A stretch of DNA of 64,000 nucleotides from Camelus ferus (GCF_009834535.1 NC_045708.1:30566001-30630000); one strand, 5' to 3'. Counted from the first letter of the stretch, positions 18,023 to 56,560 are shown. Numbers and translations: made by a program. Notes: generated from the sequence alone by a model not told the origin.

Positions 18023-18179
18023 TTATTTATTTATTTATTATTGTATTATTTAATTGTTTTATTTTGGGGGGGGTAATTAGGTTTATTTTTAGAGGAGGTA
18101 CTGAGAATTGAACCCAGGACCTTCTATGCTAAACATGCTAAGCAGGGGCTCTACCACTTGAGCTATACCTCCCCCAAAG
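18023..18179 (-). mobile_element. Camelid tRNA-Ala-derived SINE (Vic-1-like)
   Basis: - strand GGGGAGGTATAGCTCAAGTGGTAGAG...GGTCCTGGGTTCAATTCTCAGTACCTCC plus A-rich tail; near-perfect TSD GTTTACTTT(T)AAAA at 18010 and 18180. Confidence 0.88.
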
Positions 18180-20725: not shown

Positions 20726-22483
20726 ACTAACATATGGTGCCAGACACGTATTAAGTGCTTAAAAAATGTTAGTTCAATAAATGTAAATCTCAGCATATTA
20801 TTAATATGCTAAGAAAAAAAATTTTTTTTCTGATCATCAGCACTAGTAATGCACACTAAGCAAGGAGTCAGCCCTGGCTGTGACCCGAAAATAGCTAGGT
20901 GATCCAAGGTCACCAATCCCCATCTCTGTACCTCAGTTTCCTTAACTGTAAAATTAGAAATTCTCTCAAGTCTGTTCCTGTAACGGATTGATTCTCTCTC
21001 TGGTATCCTTCAGGACTGCTCTTGCCTTTCTCCGATCTCCTCCATCTCCTCTCCCCTCACCCCACCCCCAGCCCTTCTTTACCCGCCAAGCACGTGGCAT
21101 CTCATTTCCTTTCCTCATGTGGACAACCACACTGCTAGTGGTTCACCCTGCCACCACTTTCTCCTTCTCCCAAGGCTTATTACATGTGGCTTCCAGAATT
21201 AGCATTCCATAGCCCTGTTCTGATGATGGCTCCCTGAAGTCTGCAGAATTTTCTTCCCAGTCTGGCCTCACTCTATGCGAATGGCCATCCTTGCTCTCTC
21301 TAGCAATATTTGGGATCAGTTTCAAATGTCATGTCATCTTTCAAGTCTAATTTCTCTGAGACAAAGCTATATTCTCCCCGATTTGTGCTCCCACAGCTTG
21401 CTGTACACACCCTTTTTGTAGCCCTTACTACTAAAGGGATTCTTAACAGCAAAGCAAGGCAAAACAAAAGAATATAAAGTCAAGCACTTTAATTACCTGT
21501 ACAAGAACTGGAATGTACTAAGTATTCAATAAATGTTTGTCAAAGAATTTTTTAAAGTGCTGTTAAGTGACATGACCAAAGACATAGCCCAATTATTTTG
21601 GCTTCAAGTCCAGCACTCTTCTGGGAAACTAGAAGGAATGGAACAGAACTGCGTAGGCCAAATGCTTGTGGGGAGGTGGAAGTCTGAGATTCCCCAAGAT
21701 TTTCCAAGTCTCTCTTTAGAGTGAAGGTCTGCTCAACTATGGATATAACAGATTGACGGCACAGTCCCTCTTTCTCTTTCCCCCCAGTAAAATCGGGCCA
21801 ATAATGGCCTCGACTTTACAGGACATTGCCAGGATCTGGACAAATGAATTCATAAACGCGAAGTACTTAACAGTGCCTGGAAGTATGTGTTGGTTATCAT
21901 CACCATCTTACACAAGTCAGAGAGTTCCAAATCTATGTACACACTTGGACTTAAGGCACTCTGGAATTCCTAAAACACTCATTTTCGCTGGAAACCTGAC
22001 AGACTAGCCAGAGGGTCCCCCACGGGGAGGGGCCATACAGCCCCTACTGGCGACGTGGCAACCTCACATCCTGAAGGAAAGCTACTGCACTCCAGGAGCA
22101 GGAAAAGCATCACTGAAAAGCGAACCGGAAGGAAGATATTGTAGAAAGGTCCTAGCTTCTTACTCCGTTACTTACAATGAATCAGAATCAGAGACCCAAG
22201 CTGCCGCATTAGTTCCCTCTAGGAGGCCTCTCGGGGACACAAGGCCAAGTTTTGCTTGGTCTGTGCCTTAACCCTAGGCTGGACTTTTAGGATCACCATC
22301 TGCCTATGCGAACCGGGCGAAGCTAGTCTCCCGGCAGGGTCCCTGCTCTCCCTGGGTCCGGGGAGAGCTCTCCAGCCAGAGGCCACTTTTCCACTCCACG
22401 GACACTTCCCTGGTCCCCCAAGTCCCCCCGGGTCAACCACGCCCAGAAGGACTCCGGCCGCCTGGGCCCAGGCAGGTCTGCAC

Positions 22484-22948
22484 CTTGAAGTAGGCGACCT
22501 GCAGATAGTTGTAGGGGCTTCGCTTGTGGAACTCCAACTCCAGCTCCTCGCTGAGCGAGAGGGCAGCCGATGGCCCGAGGCAGCGGCGCAGGCAAGCGGC
22601 TCGGCGGAGCAAGCCCCCGAAGAAGTGCAGGTCGTGCAGGGCGGCGGCGCCCGAGGCCTGAGCCTGGCTTGGGGGCGAGGCGGGGTCCAGCTCCCACGGC
22701 AGGTCGGCGGCACACTGGGTGCGGCAGCGCAGCCGGAGGGCGCGCAGGGCTGCCCGTGATCGCAGCGCCCGCTCCATGCTCAGGACCACCCCGGCCCAGT
22801 CCCCGCGCGCGTAGGCCGCGGTCCCCTCCGCGAAGAGCAGATCAGGAGCCGCCATGTCCCACCCCGCCTCCGAGTCGGCCTCGGCCCGCGAGACAGCGGC
22901 GGCGACCGCCAGCAGCGTAGTCAGCAGCCTCAACGCGCGTGCCGCCAT
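22484..22948 (-). CDS. P3H1: Prolyl 3-hydroxylase 1 (leprecan), exon 1 (465 nt)
   Basis: MAARALRLLTTLLAVAAAVSRA signal peptide, CRTQC and CLRRC CXXXC motifs, ends YNYLQVAYFK; donor AAG|GTGCAG. Confidence 0.97.
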
Positions 22949-30840: not shown

Positions 30841-30954
30841 AGCGGTGGATGTAGCTCAGTGGTAGAGCACATGCTTAGCATGACCAAGGTCCTGGGTTCA
30901 AGTTCTAGTACATCCACTTAAAAACAACAAGAACCAAAAAACCCAAAAAACTAA
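30841..30954 (+). mobile_element. Camelid tRNA-Ala-derived SINE
   Basis: GTAGCTCAGTGGTAGAGCACATGCTTAGCATG...GGTCCTGGGTTCAAG plus A-rich tail; short TSD AAACTTTC at 30831 and 30955. Confidence 0.85.
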
Positions 30955-34550: not shown

Positions 34551-36758
34551 GTGCACATAGCCCCCTGCTGTTCTGTGAGCTCCAGAAGGGAGGAAGCTCG
34601 AAACTTCCAGCAGTTGGGGAGGAAGGTGTTTCTTCGCTATCCCTGCTTCCTCTCTCTTCTGAAGGAAGCTGCGGGGATGTCCAGGCTAACAGATGCATGA
34701 TCAAGTCCTTAGAATGATAATGATGACGACTGAGCTTCTGCTCTGTGCTGAGCACCTCATGTAATCTCATTTAATTCTCACAGCAATCCTCTTTTACAGA
34801 TTAGGAAATAGGTTCAGGAAACTACAGTGATGTGTTCAAATTTTATGCACCTGCTAAGTGTTAGAGCTGGAATGTAAATCTGGTTAACAGTTAAAGCCAG
34901 CAATATAATTATGTGATAGTTTTAATTTTGCCACTTTAATGGTCCATGTGGCCTGGACAAATGAAGAGAAATGCAAACCATAGAAAGAAGACGACCTGAC
35001 TCTTGGACTTGGACTCAGCACAGCTTTGGTTGCTTCCATCTTGCATCTCCCTCGTAGTTTCTCAGACACCTTAGATGCGACTTTAGTGTCAGACCGTGTT
35101 CAGGTCTCAGCTCCACTAATTAATAACAGTGTAAGCTTCAGTAAAATCGGCTCATGCCCCATTTCTTCTGGAGAATGGGAACGCTAATACTAACCTCAGG
35201 GGCACTTGAGAAAATCCAGTAAGATGATGATGTCTGCAAAGCATTGAACACAGTGCCTAATGGCTGGTAGCCACTCAGGACACACTAGATCCTGTACCCG
35301 TCTTCCCCCTCCAGGCTGTAAGGTGAGGCAAAGGGTCTCCTGACCTCCTAGCTCCACACCTTCTCTTAGCAATAGGGTAGTCAGAGAATGTGGGGTGGGT
35401 GTTAGCACTGGTGCTTGGGATCCTACCCAGTAGTAACACATTTCTTTCTGTGGCACACTATTCTTTCAGTTGCCAAATCTGGATACCTCAGACAGGCTCT
35501 AACCACCCCACCACCACCCCAACACACACACACACTCTTGGGATTCCATCCCACAATGGCTCCTGGTCTGGCTACTTCTTCCCATTCCTTTCTGTTGCTG
35601 TCCAACAGTATGTCTTTACTCCAGGCCTGCTCATCTCTCACGCAGTGTTACAGAGCCTTCCTCAACACTGGCTGCCACATAATCTTTCTAAACCAACCCG
35701 ACCATGTCACGTACCTCCTTAAAATTTACTATTTTCAAATTTACCCCAGCATCCCTTTGCAGCCTTATCTCCCCCAACTCACTTCCAGCTCACCTCCCAC
35801 ACACCGTGCGCTCTGGTCTCTTCCTGGCCAAGCCTTTCCGTACTCGCCATGATAGACTAGTCCCCTCCTCTCAGATCCTCCATTCCGCCTGCCGCGCCAC
35901 TTCGTGACCTAGGGCGCCCCTGTAAATTGAGGCCCCTTTCCCTGCCAACTACAGCCCCGTTGCCCCTCCCCTGTTCTCCCGGGGATTGTGAGCTAAGAGC
36001 CAGGGGTGAGAGGCTTGGGACGGCGCGGCTCCCCCTCGCCTGGGCTGGCCCCCGCCCACCGCACAGGAAGCGGGGAGAGAGTGTGGCCCCCACCCCACCT
36101 AGGAATGTCTAGTCCCCAGGTAAGCGTCTTCAGGTCTTCAGCATCGCTGGTGAGCCTGCCCCCAGTGCTGTCGGTGACCACGCCCCTGGGGGAAGGCGCT
36201 GTGCCAAAGTGCGGTTGCCGAGCCCCGGCTCTGTCTCGTCCATCTTTTCGAGGGGGCGTCGCGGTTGTCATCGCGGTCTGGGCGCAGAACGGCGGGCGGG
36301 GAGGGAATCCCTGGTGTCTCTAGTTCAGATAGACGAGCTCTCTGTTGGGGATGCTGGCCTCTAATGGGGATGGGAGTGGGAGCTGGGAGGGGGAGGCAGA
36401 GCGTCTCTAACCAGCGTGACTCTGCCTATGGCTCAGCCCCTGCGGGACAGCACCACCTGGAATATTCTCGCTCCAGTGATGCGCCAGGGTTTCCGGACAA
36501 GGAACCAACACCGCCAAGCCTTTCCTGAGACATCTCAGAGTCATACTCAACCCTCCCCTCTTCTTCCGGAAGCAGCCCCAGTGTCTGCCATTTCTGCTCG
36601 CCCAAATCGTTCTCCTCACTCACCAGTCTCGCGGCTCATTTCCTTTTCTTCAGTCTCTCCCCTCCCAGCCCGCGTGTGACCAAGACACCTCCTTACTAAA
36701 TAAATTATATCACTGCCTATCCACAGGCTGCAATTCAAGGTCACAGCAGCTTATCCAA

Positions 36759-36786
36759 ATGTGGCCTCCCTGCCGACTTTGCATCG
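36759..36786 (+). CDS. TMEM269: TMEM269 candidate first coding exon (28 nt, MWPPCRLCI-G)
   Basis: ATG 36759; donor TCG|GTATTG in phase 1 fits the open frame entering the next exon at 40300; TATA-like TAAATAAATTATAT at 36697-36710. Confidence 0.55.
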
Positions 36787-39700
36787 GTATTGTGCTGGCA
36801 CCCTTGCCAAGAAGTACCCCCCTTGTTGATGCTTAGAGACCCTCCCTAAATACTGCAATGGCGGAATCTTCCCCTGCCACCACCTCAGCCTTAGTCTTCC
36901 CCTGGACATCCTCAGCAACCAGACAACCCCCTTGTCTAACAGAACACTTGCCACACTGCCTTCACTGTCCCTGCACACGTCTGCCCCCGCTGCCAGACTC
37001 CCAGCTTCTTGAGGATGCTCACTGTGCCCAGAACACACAGGCCTGGCATAGAGCAGGCATTGGCAAATAAATCTTTTTAATGAGTAAATGGAAGATCATA
37101 AGTGTTGGGTAGATGCTTGGTGTGTTGAAGGGGCTGGATTGTTGAGAGCTTTTTTGAGAAGGCTTCTCATAAGACAAGCTGGACAGGCTCTGAGTAATTT
37201 GGTGCAGGGAGAGGATCTCGGGCAAGCACTGGCGTGCTCTATTAATTTAACAATCATTGAACAACTTCTATTGTCAGGCCTCATGCCCGGCACAGGGGAC
37301 CTCGGTCGGCACTCAAGTTACTTCCCCTGTAGTAGAGGAGGAAGACCACATAAGCGGTGCCAATACAGAGTGCCAAGTGTCACACGGTGAGCACAAGGAG
37401 TTGTGGCAGTACAGAGGAGGAGCACCTCAAGGCTTGCCAGGGGTGTCAGGCTTCCCAAGAGGACCACCACCCAATCCAAGACCAGAGTGGGGTGTAGAGA
37501 AGGGGTCAAGGGGCAAAAGAGAGAGGAGGCTGAGAGTTGAGCAGGGCTTCTTCACAAAGGACTTGCATACCAAATGAAGGAATTGGACTCCATCCCAAGG
37601 GCACTGGGGAGCCACTGATGGTTTCCAAGGAGCTGGGGAGTGACATGATCTGGTCTGCAGGCCACTGCTGTGCAAGGCCCTGGCTCTGACTCCCCTCTTC
37701 TAAGAAGCCTTCTCTGAGACCCCTGACAGGTGAGGTCCCTCTTCTGTGCTCCCTTAGCAGCCTCATCACTTCTTTTCTGTTCAGGGTTGGATGCCTCCCC
37801 TAAACTGAGCTTTTTGAGAGATAAGACCAGGTCTTAATCTTCTCTGTGTCCCAAGACCGAATGTTTGCTGAATGTATGGATTGTTCCTTTTTTTCTCTGA
37901 ATTTCTACAGCCCTTACTCTCAGGTCCACATCCTTTCACAGCTGGGACCTGTGCATTTTGCTGCAAATAGCATTTAATTGGGAAAGAGGAGGCCCAGTTC
38001 CAAATGGTTCCACCAATTACTGGGACAAGTTGCTTAACTGTCCTGAAACCTGTTTCCCCATCTGTAGGATGAGTTACCACTGTGAACTGAGTCTGTAAGT
38101 CTTCCCACGCATGCATGAGTCTTGTTTTCCTGGATAGACTATAAGTTCCATGAAGGCAGGGACCAAGGGCTTTCCCCAGCACCTCCCTCAGTCTAAGCTT
38201 ACAACAAATGCAATGATCAGTCCTGTTGGTTAGTAGAGTAAATAAGAAAGCAGAGTAAATAGGAAAGAACACGTAAGGTGAAGTTGGAAGTCTTTTGCCA
38301 CTTCCCGTATGACCTTGAGCAAGGTTCTTCCTCTCTCTGTCTTCTTTGCCTTACCTGGCAGACCTCATAGGGCCATTGGAAACCAAAGAGGTGAAAGTGC
38401 CTTGTGACTGAAAGAGATAATATAGTAGAAAATTAATTGAATATTAACCCCCCCAAACTATGAAATAGTGCAGATGAGGCGTATCTAGTAATTGGTAGAC
38501 ATACCCCAGGCATCTGCTAACTGCCTCTGAGAGGCTAGGATGCTGCTTTTCCAGGCACCAGTGGGCTAGGCTGGAACAGAAGTATTTGGTCTTGCTGGGT
38601 GGGATCAGCCCTGAGACCCAGGACAGACCAGGAGGGAAGAGTTTGCGGGGTGGGAGTGTGCATCCAGTCCTTTGCCCTCTCTCCTTCCAGATTTCTCTGG
38701 TAAGCATCGCTTTCTGTCTTAGGTTTTGAGGTGCCCTGGCATGACAAGGTCTCAGGAGTCCCAGTGGCTTTAGCAGTGTAGCTTCTGATGCCCCTTGGTG
38801 AAGAAGCTGGCCTGTGGGAGCAGTAAGCCCCACCATGCTGCCCTGGTAAACTCCCAGTCCCAAACTAGAAGTACAGCCCCCTTGCAACCTCTGACATCTT
38901 GGTGGCAGTGTTTATGGTTTAAACTATAATTAGTGTTTAAACCATGATTTGTTTTAGCTCTTGCCAAAACCAAAAGGGCCTGGGACTGTATGGAGGCTGA
39001 GTCTCAGCTTCCTCACTCTAAAATGAGTAAGGATTTAATGAGAAGACAGACATGAAAACACCCCAGAACTTGTATATTTTACTCACATGCAGAATTGCTG
39101 TTTGCAGGTAGCGTGTTTACAACCAGTATTTCAGAGGGCACTGGGGCTCTTTCTCCAAAAGAAAGTTTCACATAGTTTATGTGTAAGGAGTGCACATCTT
39201 TGGTCTTAGAGTGAAAACAGAGACAGAGGGACTGTGAAAATGGGCAGGGCCAGCTAATGCACTGCTGCTGAGGGAGGCTGGGAGGAGTGAGGAGGCCGGG
39301 GCAGGCCTGGGCTGGCCATCTGAGCTCCCTCATTGCCCCCTGCCCCACAGACCTCTCCTGCTGAGATTATACGCCTGGCAGAAGAAGCACCAGATTTAGA
39401 ATCAAACAGGCAGGATTAGGTTCCACTCACCTAATATGTGACTTTGAGCAAATATCTCCATTTCTCTGAACCTCAGTTTCCTCACCAATGAAATGGGGAG
39501 ATTGCTAGCACCATTACTGGAGGCTGTCAGGATCAGAAAAGAGAATGCAGTGACATTGCCCTGTGAACTGTTTAGTGCTGCCCATATTCATTTTCTGTTT
39601 CTCATCTCTTCCCTTCTGGAACTGGGCCTGCTGTTGGGGCTTGTCAGGACCAGTACCTTGGGGCACCTCGGCCACAGCTCTGTCCTTCTGAGGGAGTGAG

Positions 39701-40299
39701 CATGGCCTGCGGGACAAAGGAGCCTGAGTCTGCAGTGGGCCCTTTGTGCTTCCTTCCTGCCAGGTAGCCTCTCTCCCCCCGGGCCACTCCTGGGGGTGAG
39801 GGGGTTACCCTTTCCCAGTGTTTTTATTCCTGTGGCACTTACCCCAAACTATTAAAAGTAGCTTTGTAATTAAAATAAAAAAGGAGAGCTCATCGACGGT
39901 AAAGGTCTCTATGATGAAAGGCTTGTCTCTCAGAAAAGGGAAGGACCTTACCCCTTGGACCCCAAGCCATGGGGTGCCAGGAGGGTCAGCATATGGGTTG
40001 GAGGGAGGTCTGGGCTGTAGGGCAAGGGGTGCCATCAGAGAAGGGTAAGAGCTATGGTTGTGCTGGTTCACTCGCTTTGCTGTCAGACTTTCCCAGGCCC
40101 TCATCTTTAGCACCTTTGTCTTACCTCCTAGGTCTCCTCCATCTACCTCCTGCCTTCCTCTTTCCAGCCAGCGAAACAGTGTTGGGAGGGTGCCCTTCTG
40201 GGATGAGGTCAATGGGAACAGGAGCGCCCAGGTCCTTGGGGGCCTCTTTTGGGACTCTCTGAACTTGGCAACCCTTTTCTCCTCTCCCCTTGGGCCCAG

Positions 40300-40438
40300 G
40301 TCAGCTTGCCAGTTTCTTCCTGACTGAAGATCACATCCACCCCCAGATGAATGAATTTTCCTGGAAGGATGTTACCAATGCCTTGTCCCTGGCCAACATG
40401 ATCCTGGGGCTCTTCTCTATCTTCTGCAGCTTCTGCAA
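40300..40438 (+). CDS. TMEM269: TMEM269 exon 2 (139 nt)
   Basis: Strong pyrimidine tract ...ccttttctcctctccccttgggcccag|; frame open G-QLASFFLTEDHIHPQMNEFSWKDVTNALSLANMILGLFSIFCSFC-K; in-frame ATGs at 40347 and 40398; donor AA|GTAGGT. Confidence 0.85.
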
Positions 40439-41429
40439 GTAGGTCTGGGCCCCAGCAAGCTCCTAGCCAAGAATGGGAGTCAGTGGCATGAGGGAATGAG
40501 GTGGGAGTCTAGAGAGCTGGGCACTGAGGTGTACAGATCAATTGGGGGCAGGAGAAAGTGCAGTGGGTTGGGAGTCAAGGGGCTGAGATCCTAGCCTCAG
40601 TTCTACCACCAACCTGATATGGCCTTGGCTAGGTCACATCCTGAGCCTCAGTTTCTCCATCTTTAAAACAAGGAGCTCACACTGTGATCTCTATAGTTCC
40701 TTCCAGCTTTGCCAGCCTAGAATGGTTTCTATGAGAAAGTCAAGCAATTCTGTTCTGGCAGCCTTCGCACAATCCTTAAGTAGTCAGGCTACCTACCATC
40801 AAATTTTTTTGATTCTTAAATTAGAGCATATGATCTAGCAGAATAATTGAAATTAACATTGTTCTGGAAACTCTGAGACTTATGTATGGCCCCCCAAAAA
40901 AGCTATAAGCAAATTATGTTTCTATAAATTGAATCATATTTTAACGTCTTTGGGAAATCAGCTCTTTAAAGATAAGTCCTTTATAATACAAATAACATCC
41001 TCCTAATCTGTTTGATTCTTATAACCATTAGCAAGTGACTTTTCTGGATCTGTTTCTCATCTGTAAAATAAGATGATTTTACCTGATGATGTTTAAGTTC
41101 CCTTCCAGTCTGAAAGTTTTATGATTCCCTAAGTCTGGGTTTTGGGGGCCTCATAAAGTGGGGCATACCTGCAGCTGAAAATCTCCATCTTCTTAGTTCA
41201 GCCTAATCTTCTGGGAGCGTAGGTTATATGTCATGATGGGGGCCCAATTCCTTTTAGACACATAGGTATGGGTCTCAACAAAGGAAATGCTAAGTTTGTT
41301 TCGGGACAGCTGAGGTCTGGAGTCAGGCTCTGTTTGCTTCTGCTGGGCCACCCAAGCATTGCAGCTCCTAGGGCAGCTTGGCCTGAGATTGTGGTGGCTG
41401 CTTTTAGAGGGGTCTGGGAATATGTGCTG

Positions 41430-43680
41430 GAAAGAAACAGAATCCTTGAATGTAGAGTCTGAAAGATGCCTTGGAAATTATTCAGAGCATCAAGATACAT
41501 GAGACAAAAACTGATAGAACTACAAGGAGAAACTGATGAATCTGTTATCATAGTTGGATATTTCTATACCCCTCTATCAGTAATTGACAGATCCAGCAGG
41601 CAGAAAATCAGTAAGGATATAGTTGAATTGAATAGCATCATCAATCCACTGGATCTAATTGATATTTATAAATATCATCCAACAACAGCAGAATACACAT
41701 TCTTCTCAAGCTCACTAAGACAGACCACATTCTGGGCTGTGAGACATACTTTAACAAATAAAATAGAAATCATATAAAGTATGCTGTCAGATATTCTTCT
41801 GGAATTAAACTAGAAATTAATAACAGAGATAACTAGAAAACCCCAAAATAGATGGAGGTTAAACAACTTACTTCTAAATAATACATGATAAAAAAAAAAG
41901 AAGTCTCAAGAGAAATTTTAAAATATTTTGAACTAAAAGAAGTGAAAATACAACTTAGCAAAATTTGTAAGATGCAGTGAAAGCAGTGTTTAGAGGGAAA
42001 GTTATAGCATTGAATGCATATTTTAAAAAAGAAATCTGCTCTGCAAAAGATAGCATCAAGAGAATGAGAAGAAAAGCTTCAGACTAGGAGAAAATGTTTG
42101 TAAAAGGTACATCAGATAAAGAACTATAGTGCAAAATATATAAGGCTTAAAACTAAATAATAAGAAAACAACCCAATTTAAAAAGGGCCAAAGACTGTAG
42201 CAGATACCTCACCAAAGAAGATATACAGATAGCATTTAAGCATGCGAAAAGATACTCAATATCATATACCATCAGGGAAATGCAAATTAAATAACAGTGA
42301 GATACTACTACACACCTATTAGAATGACTGGAATCCAGAACACTAACAAAAAGAAATNNNNNNNNNNNNNNNNNNNNNNNNNNNNNNNNNNNNNNNNNNN
42401 NNNNNNNNNNNNNNNNNNNNNNNNNNNNNNNNNNNNNNNNNNNNNNNNNNNNNNNNNNNNNNNNNNNNNNNNNNNNNNNNNNNNNNNNNNNNNNNNNNNN
42501 NNNNNNNNNNCCAAATGAATTTAAAACTATGTCCAAAACCTGTACGNNNNNNNNNNNNNNNNNNNNNNNNNNNNNNNNNNNNNNNNNNNNNNNNNNNNNN
42601 NNNNNNNNNNNNNNNNNNNNNNNNNNNNNNNNNNNNNNNNNNNNNNNNNNNNNNNNNNNNNNNNNNNNNNNNNNNNNNNNNNNNNNNNNNNNNNNNNNNN
42701 NNNNAAGAGCCTTAAATGCATATTATTAAGGGAAAGAAGCCAATCTAAAAAGGCTACATATTGTATGACTCCAACTATGTGACATTCTGGAAAAGACAAT
42801 GTGAGGGAAATATGTCTCCAAAAATATAGAGATAATAAAAAGATCAGTGGTTGCTAGGAGGGCTGGGAAGGACATAAATAGGTAGAGCACAGAGGATTTT
42901 TAAGACAAAGTACTCCATTGAAAAAAAAAGAAAAAGAAAGTACTCCATATGATATTGTAATGATGGATATGTCATTACATTTTTGTGCAAACCATAGAAT
43001 GTACAACACCAAGAGTGAACCCTAAGGTAAACTATGGATTTTGCGTGATTATGATGTGTCAGCATGGGTTCATTCTTGGTACATACCAGGAACCAGGATG
43101 TACCAGGCTAGTGAGTGATGTTGTCAACATGGGAGAGGCTGTGCACATGTAGGGACAAGGTGCAAATGGGAACTCTGTACTTTTGCTCTCAGTTTTGTCG
43201 TAAACCTAAAACTTCTCTAAAAAAATAGTCTTAGAAAAATTTGAAAGGAAGGAAGATCTAAAATCAATGATGNNNNNNNNNNNNNNNNNNNNNNNNNNNN
43301 NNNNNNNNNNNNNNNNNNNNNNNNNNNNNNNNNNNNNNNNNNNNNNNNNNNNNNNNNNNNNNNNNNNNNNNNNNNNNNNNNNNNNNNNNNNNNNNNNNNN
43401 ATGAAACCAAAGCCTGGTTTTTTGAAAAGATCAGCAAAATTGATAAACCTCTAGTCAGGCTAACCAAGAAGAAGAGAATTACCAGTATCAGAAGTGAAAG
43501 ACGAGGAATCATTACATGAACATTAACAGATAATAAAGGAATATTGTGAACGATTTATGCCCACAAATTTGATAGCCTGGATGAAACAGTCCAATTCCTT
43601 AGAAGACATAAGCTACCAAAACTCACACTAGGAGAAATAGATAATCTAAATAGGCCTCTATGTATTAAAGAAATCATTTG
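41430..43680 (+). mobile_element. Old L1 ORF2 endonuclease/linker fragment interrupted by a nested L1 3' fragment (about 42035-43230)
   Basis: YMRQKLIELQGETDESVIIVGYFYTPLSVIDRSSRQKISKDI (endonuclease domain), resuming at 43235 with GGAAGATCTAAAATCAATGA...GGTTTTTTGAAAAGATCAGCAAAATTGATAAACC. Confidence 0.85.
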
Positions 43681-43900
43681 GTACAAGCCCCTCATTTTAC
43701 AGATGGAGGGACAGAGGCCTGTAGAAAGTGGGAGGTGATTTACCTGAGAATTCACAGTGAGATGGTTGCAGAGGCTGGGCCAGGGCCTAGGATCCCGCTT
43801 GCCATTGAACATGCCTGGAACTTAGAGTTTAAAGGGACCTTAGTGATTACCTAGGGGGTTCAGGTAAGACTGTGGGTTGAAGGTATGGAAGGGATGTAGG

Positions 43901-43903
<3 letters not shown>

Positions 43904-43958
<55 letters not shown>
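43904..43958 (+). repeat. (GT)27 microsatellite
   Basis: Counted directly. Confidence 0.97.
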
Positions 43959-43959
<1 letters not shown>

Positions 43960-44108
43960 TGTGTAAAGCAGCATCTATCAGAAAGGATGTAAGTGTGGGG
44001 AACATGTAGGGGGGTGTGTATATGTGCACGGTGGGAAGCATATTGGTATATTGGAGGGAGGGTGGAGTCCAGTGGAGACTCTGAAAGAGCTGTGGGCCTG
44101 CACTTTAG

Positions 44109-44206
44109 GAAATCCCCCTGCGCCTCCTGGTTGCTTTTGGTCGGCTTTCTGTTAGACATGGCTATCGGAGCAGTGACCAGACACCTCAACATCTGCTCCA
44201 AGTCAG
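44109..44206 (+). CDS. TMEM269: TMEM269 exon 3 (98 nt)
   Basis: ctttag|K-KSPCASWLLLVGFLLDMAIGAVTRHLNICSKS-G|gtgagt. Confidence 0.92.
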
Positions 44207-44870
44207 GTGAGTCCAGGCCTCAGACTCGTCATCCCTGACCCCGGGAGCACCCATTCAGGTCAGCTCCTCCATCCTCTAACATCCAGCGGGCTTTCATCAG
44301 TCTCCAGTCCTGTTCGCATCCCTCTGAGTATAGCAGAGGCAGCCCTAGGACAGGAGTTTGTGAGCCCCACAGTCCAGATCTAGGTCCTCTGCTGGCTCAC
44401 CTATTGATCTCTGGCTGTCCTTGTCCTGGCTTTCAGTTTCCTAATCTGCCCTGCCTCCCTCTTCAGGGCCGATCTGGGACTGGGAGTGGTGATTGTGGTA
44501 ATGAGGGAGTGGGGAAATGAAAAGTTACCCCAAGCAGAGCAGCTGGTTTAAAATACAGTAAAAATATTTCCATGTAAGATTTTACTTGAAAAAAGAGTTT
44601 CATAGCTTATCAATTTGTTCCCAGTTGAGTTCCAACATTTGCATGTTTAAGGATGGGAAAACTAAGACCTAGACAGGGAAAGGCTTGCTTGGGGCCACAT
44701 GGTCAGTTTGAGGCAGAGCTTAGAAGGACACTCTAGTCTTTGACCTAGAGACCAGAGGAGAGCAGCTGTTGCCCTCTGGGATCCTGCTTGTCACACTCCA
44801 GACCCCCACCAGGGGGGACTAATGTACAAGACATATGACTGTAAGTTCTAACCTTGGCCTTCTGGAGCAG

Positions 44871-45014
44871 GAGCTGAGCTGAATGACTTTGCTGTCTTCA
44901 CCACCTTTGGCCTGGCATCAGCCCTGCTTCTAGGCGTGGATGGGCCTCTGAATGGGTTCCTCGCCATCATCTATGTGTTAGCTATTTCCTTCCGCCTCTG
45001 TTTTTATTCACCTG
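44871..45014 (+). CDS. TMEM269: TMEM269 exon 4 (144 nt)
   Basis: gagcag|G-AELNDFAVFTTFGLASALLLGVDGPLNGFLAIIYVLAISFRLCFYSP-G|gtgagt. Confidence 0.92.
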
Positions 45015-45629
45015 GTGAGTGGAAGCCAGCCTTATGGCTGAGGGTCTGGCATCATGGAGGGGAGGAGTTGTTGGTGCCAGAAGCCTGGGGTGCAGTAATT
45101 GACTCCTCTCCTTCCTTTTATGGACACCCCCTTCCTTCCTTCTCCCCTGCTCCAGGCCCACTGGAGACCGCAAGCTGCACTGGCAGAGCCCTGGTCTAGT
45201 GGGCGGGAGCCCTCGGTTCTTGGACCAGCTGTGACTTTTTCTTGTTGTGTGTCCTTTGGATGGAGCATATGGATTCACAGGCTTTAAAACTAGGTGGAGA
45301 AACTGAGCTCTGGTGAGGGCGATTGCCTTGCCTGAGGTCACATGGCAAGGGATTGCAGGCGCAGACTAAATGGTCTCAAAGGACCCTTCTACAGAGGCTC
45401 CATAGGGGCTGGGACATAGGCCTGGTCCTAGCTTCCAGCTTCACCTTGGGGATCGAGTGCAAAGCCCACCTGTCGTCTCGGAATAACTAAGTGCTTTACA
45501 GATGTGCACTGCCCTGGGATTAAGGGGGTTTGGAATGTGGGGCAGAGAAGACTCAAAGAGAGAAGGCTGCTTCTTGTGCATGGTTTGGAGCAGTGGGAAG
45601 CAGCTCACCCCATCTTCTTTTCCTGGCAG

Positions 45630-45830
45630 GCATTCCTTTCACATACAAGGGTCTACCCTGCCCCTATGCTTCCTGTGTTTTGGCCTCCACCTCCCTTCTG
45701 ACCAACGGCAACACGTTCATTCTCTCTTGCATGGCCTGTCTCATGATTCTGTTCATGATGGATCAGAGCTACTACCCACATGACGAAATCCTGGAGTCTG
45801 AGAACTGGAAAAAAATGGTCTATCTGGGAG
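45630..45830 (+). CDS. TMEM269: TMEM269 exon 5 (201 nt)
   Basis: tggcag|G-IPFTYKGLPCPYASCVLASTSLLTNGNTFILSCMACLMILFMMDQSYYPHDEILESENWKKMVYLG-G|gtgagt. Confidence 0.93.
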
Positions 45831-45844
45831 GTGAGTGAAAATAC

Positions 45845-46105
45845 TGCTCTCATATGTCACTAGTGGTCCTTTATTATCACTGCTGTTCACTGCCACCCTG
45901 TATCTCACCCAGCATTCCCTGTCTCTCTCACCCTGCTTTATTTTTTCCATAGAATTGATCATCACCTGACATGTATTTACTTGTTTATTGCCTATACACA
46001 CTAAACCTGACCCCAGTGGAGGAATCGCTTTTATTCGCGCTATAATCCCTAGCACCTAGGCTTGTGCCACTCACACAGTAGATGCTCAATAAATATTTGT
46101 TGGAT
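45845..46105 (+). mobile_element. L2 3' end immediately after TMEM269 exon 5
   Basis: CCCTAGCACCTAGG...ACAGTAGATGCTCAATAAATATTTGTTGGATG. Confidence 0.7.
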
Positions 46106-46261
46106 GTTATTAAGCTGAACAGAAATTTAGGGAACACCTATCATATGCCAGGTAGTAGGAGTCAAAACGGTGAACTAGACAAACACGTCAGGATTTACAG
46201 TCCTGTAGGGGAGACAGATACGAAACAAATCATGGCAGAAGTAACTAAAATATATAGTTTT

Positions 46262-46456
46262 TGTTTTTTGAATTTCTTAATGTTATTGAAGTACAGCCAG
46301 TTTACAATGTCATGTCGATTTCTGGTGTACCACATAATGTTTCAGTCAAACAGACACATACATATATTCCCTTTCATATTCTTCTTCATTATAGATTACT
46401 GCAAGATATTGAATATACTTCTCTGTGCTATACAGTATAAACTTGTTGTTTATCTA
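46262..46456 (-). mobile_element. 5'-truncated artiodactyl L1 3'UTR (195 nt) with perfect 16-bp TSD
   Basis: TSD TAAAATATATAGTTTT at 46246-46261 and 46457-46472; body homologous to 20530-20720. Confidence 0.9.
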
Positions 46457-46591
46457 TAAAATATATAGTTTTGATGTGTTGTGAAACTACAGGGTGCTCT
46501 CAGAGGGCATCAGAGGGTGACCTGATTTAGACTGGGATGCCTAAAGGGTAGGAAAGGATCCTTAAGGAGGTGACATTTAAATGAAACCCAG

Positions 46592-46898
46592 GTAAAAGTG
46601 GTCAAAAGGTTAAAAACTCCAGTTATAAGATAAACAAGTTCTGGACATATAATGTATAGCGTGCTGACTGCAGTTAACAATACTGTATCATCTGTTCAAA
46701 AGTTGCTACGTGAGTAGCTATTAAAAGTTTTCATCACAAGAAAAAATTTTGTAACTATGTGAGGTGATGGATGTTAACTACATTTATTATGGTGATCAGG
46801 TTGCCATATACACAAATATCAAATTGCTGTTACACCTTGGACTAATACAATGTTATATATCAATGATAGCACAACAAAACTGGAAGAAAATAAAAAAT
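46592..46898 (+). mobile_element. Older L1 (L1MA/MB-type) 3' end
   Basis: GGTCAAAAGGTTAAAAACTCCAGTTATAAGATAAACAAGTTCTGG...ACTAATACAATGTTATAT...AAATAAAAAAT. Confidence 0.75.
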
Positions 46899-48652
46899 AT
46901 GGGACACCTGCAAGATGGTTGGCCAAGTGGTGGGAGGGGTGGTTCAGAAGAGGAAACAGAATTTTGTGAATGCTCGGAGGCAAGAAAGCGTTAGAGCAGC
47001 AGTGCAGCTGGACTTGCTGAGCGAGGGGCTGGTGACAGACTGAGACCAGTGATGTGGGCAGACCGGGCAGGATTTAGGATTTGGTCCTGCAGGCAAATGA
47101 GAAGCATCTGAAGGGATTTCTGTGTGATAGTTTTCAATGATCACTTTGACTACAAAGTGGAGAATAGATTGTAGGAGACTGAGAAAGGAGGGAGAAAAAC
47201 CAGCCTTTCATCAGATAAGAGGTGATGGTGGTGGTGGGGATGAAGAGATTTGATATAAATGTTGGAAATAGGATTCATATCAAGGAAGCAGGTTCTGGGC
47301 TATAGCAACTGAGTGATGGGTTCCAGGCGCTGAGGTCCTGGTCACACTGGGGCCCTGGCAGAGGCCTTCCTAGAGTTTCCCCTGACTTAGGGCTTTCTTC
47401 AAGGAATATCAAATTTGCTTCTTTGAAATGTGCTCATGTAAACAAGACAAACATCTATGGGGATGCTGAGTTTCTTTCTGTATTCCCTCGTTGTGGGTCC
47501 ACTGGGTTTGCAGGGTCCTGGGTTCCCTCCTGACCCTCCCCTTTAGGTTCCCACCCTTTGTTCTGTAGCATTAGACCAACAACCCTGTCCAATCTCTAGG
47601 CGCTGGCTCCTCCTGTGCCCCAGTTGGCAGAGGCAGAATTGGGGTGAGAAGAGTCTGGGTTTGGAGCTAAAGAGACCTGAGTTCAAGTTCTACCCCCAGC
47701 ACATAGGGTTGCATGAATTTGGGTTAATTACCCTTCTGCAGTTTTCTTCATCTGGGAAAGCAAGCCAATTCAGGATTCTTGAAACTGAATGAGACAATGT
47801 ATATAAATCCTCTGGCACAGATGTATCCTTTAAATGGAAATTTCTAGCCCTCTTCTTCCCTCCACCTGCCCTTCTCTTATCTCATAGCAACAGTATTTCC
47901 CACCATGTTCTTTGCTCCTGTGGACACCACCGATCCTCTCTTCTCACAATAAGCAGTGCACTTGGCCTTAGCCTTCCTTGTATCGTCTGTGCTATGTGAA
48001 TAAAGGAGGGAGCTGCACCTCACAGACTTGACACTAGTTGATACTGGAGCCCTACTAGATACATTTCAGAATGCCTGCTGTAGATATTCCTCTTGCCTGG
48101 AGTGCAGCCAGTCACCTGTTTAGACTGAAGCCCCTTCTCCCCAACAGAGCTCTGTACATCTGAGAAGCTGGCCTAGCTAAGACTTTTTTCCAGGACAACT
48201 CTGGTTTAAAATATTATCTCATTGATGCAACAGGTCAATGACTGTTCTCTTGATGCCATATTCCAAAGCTTCAGGAACTTCCTGTAACTGCTTCTTACCC
48301 CAGTAGTGGTCTTCTGGCAGAGCACGAGTTCTGGTTTCTCTTGAGCACGTGGTGGTTATTCCCATGGGCATGCTGTGGGTCATACTCTCCCACCCTCCTT
48401 TTGAGCTTTCTGAAGCAGTGTAAGTGTCTAGTTATTAAGAGTTGGATAGACATGGGATTGAATCAGGGTCTTCGGCAGGTTACATCCTGTTTCCTTATCT
48501 GAAAAAGACTTAATTCTAAATCACAGGATAGCTGTGAAATGTACATAAAGTAATTTTTGTACCATACCTGGCAGAATGTCTAGCACAAAGTAGATCTTCC
48601 ACAAATGTTAGTGCCCTTTTGCCTTTCAGTGGTGAATCTGAGATTCAAATTG

Positions 48653-49197
48653 TGTTGGGCCCTCAAGACCACCTCCAGGTTCAGTGATTCTCTAGGAGGA
48701 CTCACAGGATTCTGCAGATAGTCATACTTATAGCATAAATTTACTATAGCAAAAGGATACAAAGCAAAATCAGCCAAGGGAAGGTAGAAAGGGGCGAAGT
48801 TTGGAGGGAAGCAGGCGCAAGCTTCCAAAAGTCCTCTCCCAATGGGGTCACACAGGACACACTTAATTCTCCAGAACTGAATTGTGACACAACTTCTGAA
48901 GGTCTGCCTACTGGGAAGTTCTTTAGAGACTCAGTGCTGAAGGTATTTACAGGGGCCGGACACATAAGTCTCCTCTGCCTAGCATGTACCAAAATTCCAG
49001 ACTTCCACAGAAGGAAGTCTGCGCTCCACATTAACTACCTTGCTTCTATAAACAGTCTAAGCACAGTGAGCCACTCTTCTCGGTTTTATCAGTGTAGAGA
49101 ACTATTTACTTCTCGTTTCCAGGCCTCTGCCCACCTTGCAAGCAGGCCTCTCTAAGGATAGCAGTTGCAGGCCTGCTAGGTTAACTCTTTTCTGCGT
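48653..49197. mobile_element. MER21-like solo LTR in the last TMEM269 intron
   Basis: CAAGACCACCTCCAGGTTCAGTGATTCTCTAGGAGGACTCACAGG...AAAGGATACAAAGCAAAATCAGC...GGATAGCAG...GTTAACTCTTTTCTGC matches recalled MER21 consensus blocks. Confidence 0.75.
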
Positions 49198-49546
49198 GAG
49201 TATAATATTGTATTGGCCCATATCACATGTTAAACTTGAAACAATTATGAATATTTTTCTTTTTTTTTTTAACAAGACATCTGGGCTACTCATATTTATT
49301 CTTGGCTAAGAGTGATTTCTGATCTGAATTTGACAAAACGGAACCTGAGATTACATTAGAATTAATTTTCTAGTTACGCACAGACAAACCTCGTAAAGGC
49401 AGGCTCATGTGCCATTGGTTTTAGTATCTTAGGCACTATGAGTGAAAACTGAAGGCTGGAAGGATGGGGATGGGAGAGTAGAGGGTGGAAAATACATGTA
49501 AGAGGGCTTCGTAAAAATTGAGTGTTTGCCTCTTTTCTTCTTCCAG

Positions 49547-49683
49547 GTGTCATCATGCTGTTTTTGTCTCCATTCTCGCTAACTGCTTTTTACTGCCTGA
49601 TGTGGTCACTCTCCTACATCTTCTTTCCAGATGCTCTGTGGGGCAAGGCAGCATGTCTTAGGCTACAGCACCGAAGATACTAA
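49547..49683 (+). CDS. TMEM269: TMEM269 last coding exon (137 nt)
   Basis: ttccag|G-VIMLFLSPFSLTAFYCLMWSLSYIFFPDALWGKAACLRLQHRRY*; TAA at 49681-49683; AATAAA candidates at 50380 and 50618. Confidence 0.92.
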
Positions 49684-55704: not shown

Positions 55705-56560
55705 TATTAACAAAAATTTAAAGTCTGACACTATCAAGTGTTGGAAAAGAAGTGAGGAATGAGAAGAAGTGCAAACTTGTACAATTTCTTTGAAAATAAT
55801 TAGGCAACATCTAGTAAATTTGAAAATGTACCCAATAATTCTACTCCTAGAATTTATGTATATGCCCTACAGGAATTCTAGCACATGTGCCAAAGGAGAC
55901 AACTAAAAGGTTTTCACTTCCATATTGTCTGTAATAGCAAAAATTGTTATTTAAATGCCCTATAAATTATTTAAATATCCATCACTGAAGGCCTGGGTAA
56001 ATGTACTAAAGTGGATTCATAAAACAGACTACTATAAGCAGTGCTGAGGAGTTAGCCAGATTCCTACACTGACAGGAATAGTTCTAAAAAACATAATGTA
56101 AGCAAAATGCAAAACAAAACATATGGAATTAATGTAAGTTTTAAAAAAATTTTTTGGGGGGGATGGTGGTAGTTAGGTTTATTTATTTATTTAATTTTAG
56201 AGGGAGTACTGGAGATTGAACCCAGGACTTCATGCATGCTAAGCACGTTCTCTACCACTTGAGCTATACCCTCCCCTCAATGTAAAATTTTTAAAACAAA
56301 AGAACACTGTATTGTTCAAGAATAGCTATTAATATATTTGAGTGTAAAAGTATAAAAAAACAGGGTTGCAAATAGGGAGAGGAAAAAGGGTATAAGACAG
56401 AAAATGGAAAAAGGGGACTTCATATTTATATGTAATTTTTATTGATCTTATTTAAGACTCCAGGCAAATATGATAAAATGTTAACCACTACCAATCTGGG
56501 GTGCTGAGTACCCAGGTGTTAGTTATAATGTTCTGTTTTTCTGTATTTTTAAATCTCTGG
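55705..56560 (+). mobile_element. Degraded L1ME-type fragment carrying the nested camelid SINE
   Basis: TTTCTTTGAAAATAATTAGGCAACATCTAGTAAATTTGAAAATG...CAATAATTCTACTCCTAGAATT. Confidence 0.6.
56150..56278 (-). mobile_element. Camelid tRNA-Ala-derived SINE (Vic-1-like)
   Basis: - strand GGGGAGGGTATAGCTCAAGTGGTAGAGAACGTGCTTAGCATGCATGAAGTCCTGGGTTCAATCTCCAGTACTCC plus AAATAAATAAACCTAA tail. Confidence 0.9.

Follow-up and report, generated by a model that had tools for sequence, protein, structure and literature searches.

Does a placental mammal maintain a relative of the prokaryotic and fungal phosphatidylserine synthases (PSS) whose catalytic residues are gone? This question is raised by TMEM269, a gene located in a stretch of 64,000 nucleotides of the Camelus ferus genome (GCF_009834535.1, NC_045708.1:30566001-30630000), which is called the window in the following. 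As outlined below, vertebrates carry a PSS-type relative that, judged from its sequence, looks fully competent outside therian mammals, and the placental gene has been kept for about 100 million years without catalytic aspartates. We consider it probable that placental TMEM269 is a pseudoenzyme, inactive but functional and conserved under selection. Mammalian phosphatidylserine is held to come only from base exchange (PTDSS1/2), and one reason for targeting fungal Cho1 with drugs is its supposed absence from the host. To our knowledge, textbooks deny animals a PSS-type pathway that uses cytidine diphosphate-diacylglycerol (CDP-DAG).

The window locus is the camelid TMEM269 ortholog, because the spliced protein matches residues 58-280 of alpaca TMEM269 X1 at 222 of 223 positions without a gap and shares its exon sizes with orthologs. 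The coding exons were assembled from AG/GT boundaries and phase bookkeeping on the plus strand of the window. The spliced coding sequence (CDS) consists of five GT-AG exons with consistent phases at 40347-49683 (+), and its 672 nt encode 223 amino acids (aa). Exon 1 (40347-40438, +; residues 1-31, ending in phase 2) contains the start methionine, the N-terminal horizontal helix and the first transmembrane helix, TM1 (NALSLANMILGLFSI). The same start methionine is used in hippo, humpback and a bat, whose proteins also have 223 aa, and in longer predicted isoforms the exon begins at an acceptor before 40302. Exon 2 (44109-44206, +; 98 nt) carries TM2 and the first half of the signature of the CDP-alcohol phosphatidyltransferases (CDP-APs), with the first aspartate (D1) at D47 (44155-44157), the D2 position at I50 (44164-44166), G1 at G51, the alanine position at T54 (44176-44178) and the arginine at R55 (44179-44181). 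Exon 3 (44871-45014, +; 144 nt) encodes TM3-TM4 and the second half of the signature, with G2 at G64 (a split codon), E66 (44876-44878), the D3 position at N68 (44882-44884), the invariant D69 (44885-44887), the D4 position at V72 (44894-44896) and R105 in the FRLCFY block, which corresponds to R101 of the Methanocaldococcus jannaschii enzyme (MjPSS). Exon 4 (45630-45830, +; 201 nt) contains the beta strand YKGLP, TM5-TM6 and the second beta strand YYPHD, and exon 5 (49547-49683, +) contains TM7-TM8 and the C-terminal tail up to the stop codon TAA at 49681-49683.

The complete CDP-AP signature, D1xxD2G1xxAR-x8-G2xxxD3xxxD4, is not found in the window protein, which reads DMAIGAVTR-HLNICSKS-GAELNDFAV. 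D1, G1, R and G2 are present, and D2, the alanine, D3 and D4 are replaced by I, T, N and V, respectively. The original prediction, made from the DNA alone, had read the same spacing and the same four replacements; its coordinates for D47, N68 and V72 were exact, and the further blocks that it had likened to PssA and Cho1 (TNALSLANMILGLFSI, TFGLASALL, FRLCFYS, YKGLPCPYA and LFMMDQSYYP) are all found in the protein. Its proposed start at 36759 did not hold, as the ATG at this position opens 25 codons followed by a stop and matches no ortholog. This ATG was rejected as start codon; the conserved CDS begins at 40347, in agreement with RefSeq models of 223 aa from hippo, whales and a bat.

The window protein is a true homologue, in sequence and fold, of the PssA/archaetidylserine-synthase branch of the CDP-APs. 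In Pfam, the alpaca protein matched PF01066 with an E-value of 1.2e-4 and 22.9 bits (cut-off 22), the bear ortholog reached 26.7 bits and the mole rat ortholog 18.2 bits, which is below the cut-off, and orthologs with an intact motif scored 41-58 bits. A precomputed PF01066 match is missing in most of the placental clusters listed and, therefore, the domain annotation in databases is patchy. The five exon pieces scanned singly gave no Pfam match, being too short. The exon 4 piece, compared by features with the ESM Atlas, gave a weak lead to PF08009 (score 0.81), which the Pfam scan of full-length proteins did not confirm. Among the NCBIfam models, pssA (TIGR00473) or the archaetidylserine synthase model (TIGR04217) ranked first for all eight proteins scanned. 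For the alpaca protein pssA was best (E 5e-11), the pssA and archaetidylserine synthase models together spanning 5e-11 to 5e-10, and the best E-value for a salmonid was 1e-18. With scores of 37-67 bits over the eight proteins (42.8 in the comparison with Cho1 and PssA) and a pssA equivalog cut-off of 107, TMEM269 ranks as a relative and not as an equivalog. The pgsA, ClsA, bacterial phosphatidylinositol phosphate (PIP) synthase and Pcs models gave no match at E <= 1 in the three placental proteins scanned; in motif-intact orthologs, the ClsA, pgsA and PIP-synthase models reached E-values of 1e-5 to 0.03, compared with 1e-17 for pssA. When the PDB was searched by sequence, MjPSS alone fell below E 0.01, with 0.007 for one sequence and 6e-9 for the family profile, by which PgsA reached 0.83.

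The predicted fold leads to the same branch. An AlphaFold2 model built on an alignment of 70 sequences (predicted local distance difference test, pLDDT, 85.7; predicted template modelling score, pTM, 0.85) has eight long helices at residues 3-29, 33-57, 62-83, 89-108, 122-135, 140-155, 170-185 and 188-204, and two short strands assigned by DSSP to residues 117-118 and 159-160. The six-helix CDP-AP core with the motif on TM2-TM3 is present in the model. The MjPSS structure combines eight transmembrane helices with a horizontal helix at the N-terminus, and a small sheet lies between helices 4/5 and 6/7 (PMC8633023); since the modelled helices and strands match this layout, TMEM269 is predicted to have a PSS-type architecture. 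In a Foldseek search of the PDB the top four matches were MjPSS chains (E 6e-8, template modelling score, TM-score, 0.69-0.77), and no other match fell below E 0.05. With VIA-align, MjPSS (7B1K, 7POW) was superposed with Z 22 over 192-193 residues, covering model residues 1-209, compared with Z 10-12 over residues 1-160 only for the six-helix CDP-APs (PIP synthases, AF2299, DIPPS and PgsA) and Z 7-9 for CHPT1 and CEPT1. Among the AlphaFold database models of Swiss-Prot entries, mouse and human TMEM269 were followed by bacterial PssA, archaetidylserine synthase, MjPSS, Bacillus subtilis PssA, Pcs and yeast Cho1, and a cluster search of the same database agrees with this ranking. The original prediction had placed TMEM269 among the CDP-APs of the PssA type and had pointed to profile searches and to superposition on the M. 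jannaschii structure as checks. Both bear the proposal out: PF01066 is matched, pssA and archaetidylserine synthase models rank first, and NCBIfam, the PDB sequence searches and the structures all point to the PSS branch, with MjPSS at Z 22 and every other CDP-AP structure at Z 12 or less.

What the replaced residues do is known from characterised relatives. In MjPSS, Ca2+ is bound by D41, D44, D62 and the phosphates of CDP-DAG, Mg2+ is bound by D41, D62 and D66, and D66 has been proposed to activate the water that accepts the proton. Every mutation of the four aspartates lowers or abolishes activity, some of the mutants recovering partial activity with extra Mg2+ (PMC8633023). In Candida albicans Cho1, activity is about 0% in D128A (D2) and in D150A (D4), and it is reduced 5-fold in D146A (D3) (PMC8727905). 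TMEM269 resembles MjPSS (7B1K, 7B1L, 7B1N, 7POW) in its eight transmembrane helices, horizontal helix and two-stranded sheet at 24% identity, and in the signature spacing on helices 2-3, R101 (R105 in TMEM269), the GLPxP strand and the FG(V/L)A block. However, the window protein has I, N and V at D44, D62 and D66 and T at the motif alanine. With fungal Cho1/Pps1 and type II bacterial PssA it shares the family, the motif architecture and pssA TIGR00473 as best NCBIfam model, but it is devoid of the catalytic aspartates and far below the equivalog cut-off, and the equivalent of Cho1 R189 is Phe. In structure, yeast Cho1 also matches less well (E 4e-4 to 4e-3) than PssA of prokaryotes (E 6e-9). 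It is very unlikely that a protein without D2, D3 and D4, and with Val at D4, carries out the canonical reaction; we infer loss of activity because mutation of the equivalent residues in Cho1 and MjPSS cuts activity.

The replacements were followed across vertebrates in sequences anchored on the FTTFG block and then sorted, which gave 146 full-length motif-intact and 89 placental-type proteins. All 146 motif-intact sequences are of the DLADGAVAR-x8-GAKLDDFAD type, with no exception (100%) at D2, G1, A, V, A, R, G2, D3 or D4; examples come from chimaera, sharks, coelacanth, bichir, sturgeon, gar, teleosts, salamander, frogs, tuatara, lizards, turtles, alligator, birds and platypus. These orthologs, from non-therian jawed vertebrates and platypus, are 50-63% identical to the window protein, and unlike it they keep the full signature. 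Across placentals and fishes, 41 sites are at least 95% identical. From their sequences the motif-intact orthologs look like active CDP-APs, which fits the earlier guess that orthologs in other animals might still be active. The placental-type set covers Xenarthra, Afrotheria and Boreoeutheria, and the three aspartates are gone in 89 of 89. The D2 position is V in 56, I in 31, E in one and T in one, the D3 position N in 88 and S in one, the D4 position V in 79, I in seven, A in two and G in one, and the alanine position T in 74 and N in eight. Each loss corresponds to one base change (D2 GAC->GTC/ATC, D3 GAT->AAT, D4 GAC->GTC), and reversion to Asp, also a single step, was never seen in the 89 sequences.

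Within the placental signature the two halves behave differently. The second half is rigid: G64 and D69 are kept in 89 of 89, as are L67 and F76-G77, and F73 and A71 in 88 of 89. The first half is relaxed, with G51 (G1) replaced by R in 27 of 89 and R55 by S or K in 12 of 89; D47 is kept in 89 of 89. Over residues 47-72 the mean consensus frequency is 0.954 in the motif-intact set and 0.809 in placentals; outside these residues placentals score 0.869 and motif-intact orthologs 0.766, as expected of a younger clade.

A different set of residues was lost in marsupials. The opossum (Monodelphis) protein has D1->S, D2->S, G2->R and D4->E, keeps D3, and has a linker shorter by one residue; it shares the therian-derived W6, S37 and S43 with placentals. 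This suggests independent decay of marsupial TMEM269, or pseudogenisation in some marsupials. The TMEM269 model of the sugar glider (Petaurus) is flagged LOW QUALITY. Since the platypus motif is intact and the opossum lost different residues, the catalytic site appears from the alignment to have been abandoned in therians after the monotreme split, by separate paths in placentals and marsupials.

Loss of the catalytic site was not followed by loss of constraint. Over 218 aligned codons of seven placentals, pairwise dN/dS (NG86) is 0.18-0.53, and the highest value in bootstraps of three phylogenetically independent pairs is 0.815, still below 1. By maximum likelihood (ML; GY+F3X4), omega is 0.369 and kappa 3.22, and fixing omega at 1 with kappa profiled is worse by 34.9 log-likelihood units (2dlnL = 69.8, p = 7e-17). 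The original prediction had held that neutral dN/dS would speak for a decaying reading frame; neutral evolution is rejected and omega is clearly below 1. Bird and lizard give an omega of about 0.20 with dS near saturation, and dN/dS values among platypus, bird and lizard are saturated (dS 0.9-2.0). The codon data indicate that the placental constraint is real, if somewhat looser. In the protein ML tree the placental stem measures 0.37 and the opossum branch 0.48 substitutions per site, compared with about 0.135 for the turtle since the amniote ancestor.

These observations can be combined into the following mechanism. On the placental stem, D2, D3 and D4 would each have been replaced by a single-base change, and the Ala before Arg by Thr. 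Afterwards, purifying selection would have kept D1, Asn68, Asp69, Val72 and the rest of helix 3 almost invariant. CDP-DAG alcohol transfer would have been lost in placental TMEM269 and the fold retained, that is, the PSS scaffold, helices 5-8 (the lipid channel in MjPSS), a polar pocket of D47, N68, D69 and E66, and dimer-type surfaces. Speculatively, the retained fold might bind CDP-DAG or another anionic lipid without turnover, or it might bind or regulate a partner. Several points weigh against such a pseudoenzyme. The whole-protein scans were run with the alpaca protein (residues 58-280), which differs from the window protein by one loop residue (P111T), and in Pfam and NCBIfam the placental protein scores at or below the curated cut-offs. 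An omega of 0.37 indicates moderate constraint only. Furthermore, D1, G1 (in two thirds of the species), R, G2 and the Asp beside D3 survive, K66 has become Glu, and the metal site of placental TMEM269 may be reduced or altered.

These surviving residues lead to the alternative that fares best, a rewired enzyme in which D47, N68, D69 and the placental E66 form a one-metal or metal-independent site and catalyse the same or another reaction (with another acceptor, hydrolysis or base exchange). D47 and D69 are indeed invariant in placentals and N68 is kept in 88 of 89, position 66 is E in 79 of 89 compared with K in 144 of 146 motif-intact sequences, the second half of the motif helix is as conserved as in orthologs with an intact motif, and some MjPSS mutants are partly rescued by extra Mg2+. 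We nevertheless regard a rewired enzyme as unlikely: three of the four ligands are gone at once, including the proposed base D4, which became a hydrophobic Val, the CDP-site stretch D2-G-A-V is relaxed (R in place of G51 in 27 of 89, and S or K in place of R55 in primates and mouse), and a single D2 or D4 substitution already kills Cho1 activity. Far less probable is that the gene is decaying or without function and its open reading frame (ORF) a remnant of the lost enzyme. The missing catalytic motif, the burst of change on the placental and opossum branches, the low-quality sugar glider model and exon skipping in many predicted isoforms could be read in this way. However, ORF and splice sites are intact in the window, intact ORFs were obtained from six other placental genomes (Boreoeutheria and Afrotheria), the 41 near-invariant sites extend from placentals to fishes, and N68 has been kept for about 100 million years although a single transition would restore Asp. 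With omega at 0.37 and omega = 1 rejected (p = 7e-17), the gene is not decaying. Finally, membership in another CDP-AP subfamily (cardiolipin synthase (CMP-forming), phosphatidylinositol or phosphatidylglycerophosphate synthase), to which the automatic name 'cardiolipin synthase (CMP-forming)' on many orthologs and the UniRef names of many fish ones would point, can be dismissed almost entirely, as the ClsA, pgsA and PIP-synthase models score far below pssA and the model has the eight helices and beta hairpin of PSS, with Z 22 compared with 12 or less for the others.

With the pseudoenzyme as the preferred reading of the placental protein, it may be asked which reaction the ancestor catalysed. 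In MjPSS, S63 coordinates the bound serine (PMC8633023). MjPSS R104 corresponds to Cho1 R189, and R189A raises the Km for serine. In contrast to both enzymes, every TMEM269, including the motif-intact ones, has D69 in place of S63 and F108 in place of R104/R189. R101/R186 is kept as R105, and F105 of MjPSS is Y109 or F in TMEM269. The complete serine-site residue set (MjPSS S63 and R104/F105; Cho1 R186 and R189) is thus not found in TMEM269. Because the equivalents of S63 and R104/R189 are Asp and Phe in all TMEM269 proteins, the acceptor alcohol of the ancestral enzyme may not have been serine, and 'PS synthase' is possibly a wrong name. Bacterial Pcs, which also uses CDP-DAG, is the next-best structural neighbour after PssA (TM-score 0.56-0.71, E 5e-6 to 3e-4); its model NF045886 gave E-values of 4e-4 to 5e-7 in motif-intact orthologs, but none in placentals. 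There is no sign of a recent bacterial donor, since vertebrate motif peptides searched against 185,579 prokaryote genomes hit one weak locus (36% identity over 71 aa).

Taken as a whole, we put forward the following history tentatively, with confidence somewhat short of an even chance. Jawed vertebrates would have inherited a PSS-type, CDP-DAG-dependent synthase, with an acceptor that is maybe not serine, which is still active in fishes, amphibians, sauropsids and monotremes. It would have been disabled independently in marsupials and placentals, and in placentals the scaffold would have been kept as a selected pseudoenzyme with a new role, not a catalytic one, in the handling of CDP-DAG or anionic lipid. 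In fish, birds and monotremes the gene may stand for a CDP-DAG pathway not recognised so far, and its motif-intact and disabled orthologs form a clean natural experiment for the function of an uncharacterised lipid-enzyme scaffold.

The original prediction had suspected that a domain annotation might already exist, and the family link is indeed present in database names. In older RefSeq names, some orthologs are called 'CDP-diacylglycerol--serine O-phosphatidyltransferase'. A review table pairs CHO1 with human TMEM269 (PMC11993586), and a fish paper labels tmem269 a PS synthase, by annotation (PMC7569605). The names 'PS synthase' and 'cardiolipin synthase' for TMEM269 are annotation-based labels, and annotation pipelines should be cautious in giving the name 'CDP-diacylglycerol--serine O-phosphatidyltransferase' to placental proteins or 'cardiolipin synthase' to those of fish. 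Our literature search found no study devoted to TMEM269 and none that ties pseudoenzymes to CDP-alcohol enzymes, and the therian-specific motif loss under continued selection seems to be unreported. Human TMEM269 has the lowest concordance of ten variant-effect predictors among 13,332 proteins (median correlation 0.025; bioRxiv 10.64898/2026.03.18.712765); alignments that mix two constraint regimes may explain this low agreement. In a testis yeast two-hybrid screen, TMEM269 was a candidate partner of FAM183B (PMC6168554).

The gene structure recurs in other species. Scanning 1.84 billion representative proteins with the exon 4 piece by HMMER gave 82 matches, the best being Vicugna pacos TMEM269. 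In two word-index searches, the matches listed included TMEM269 from about 115 placental clusters and from sharks, chimaera, coelacanth, ray-finned fishes, amphibians, reptiles, birds and platypus; the homologue listings were filled by vertebrates, and these figures refer to the matches listed. Of eight ortholog CDSs rebuilt automatically (hippo, humpback whale, a bat, sea lion, mouse, platypus, guineafowl and a lizard), seven contain the exons of 98 and 144 nt; the fourth exon has 201 nt in six and 204 nt in sea lion and mouse. Platypus, guineafowl and lizard have the same 98-, 144- and 201-nt exons as the window, and a 92-nt first coding exon is common to four placental models of 223 or 224 aa. 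In a separate rebuild of the tenrec gene the 144- and 201-nt exons match. Its annotated motif exon uses a non-AG acceptor (CT) and thereby gains 18 nt at the 5' end, which adds six residues (RTGLRP) absent in every other species and is probably an annotation slip. Three runs of N in the window (42358-42510, 42547-42704 and 43273-43400) all lie within the intron 40439-44108. They hide no coding sequence, because the codon split over this intron (AA|G) stays in frame, the alignment to the alpaca protein is gapless and the exon sizes recur.

Upstream of the conserved CDS, N-terminal extensions of the predicted isoforms of some species map to ~35957-36274 and ~37272-37406 and are poorly conserved. 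An alternative exon at 37275-37391 (+) within the latter stretch encodes the predicted 'isoform X1' N-terminus outside the conserved core and was placed by tblastn with the N-termini of the alpaca, cattle, deer, whale and donkey models. The predicted Manis pentadactyla isoform X2 and one further model skip the in-frame 144-nt exon 3 and, with it, lose helices 3-4 and the second signature half.

Regarding the neighbourhood, the first coding exons of CLDN19 (231-914, -) and of the prolyl 3-hydroxylase 1 gene P3H1 (22433-22948, -; MAARALRLLTTLLAVAAAVSRAEA...) sit upstream of TMEM269 in the window; both are long ORFs assigned by eye. CLDN19 and P3H1 presumably neighbour TMEM269 in other mammals as well. 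In another mammal a gene model fuses TMEM269 with ERMAP, which would fit an adjacent position of TMEM269 and ERMAP. A (GT)31 microsatellite occupies 43904-43964 in the intron 40439-44108, 145 nt upstream of exon 2. In addition, three Rfam tRNA matches of 35-42 bits at 18093-18172 (-), 30847-30916 (+) and 56201-56273 (-) are probably the heads of tRNA-derived short interspersed elements (SINEs) and not tRNA genes.

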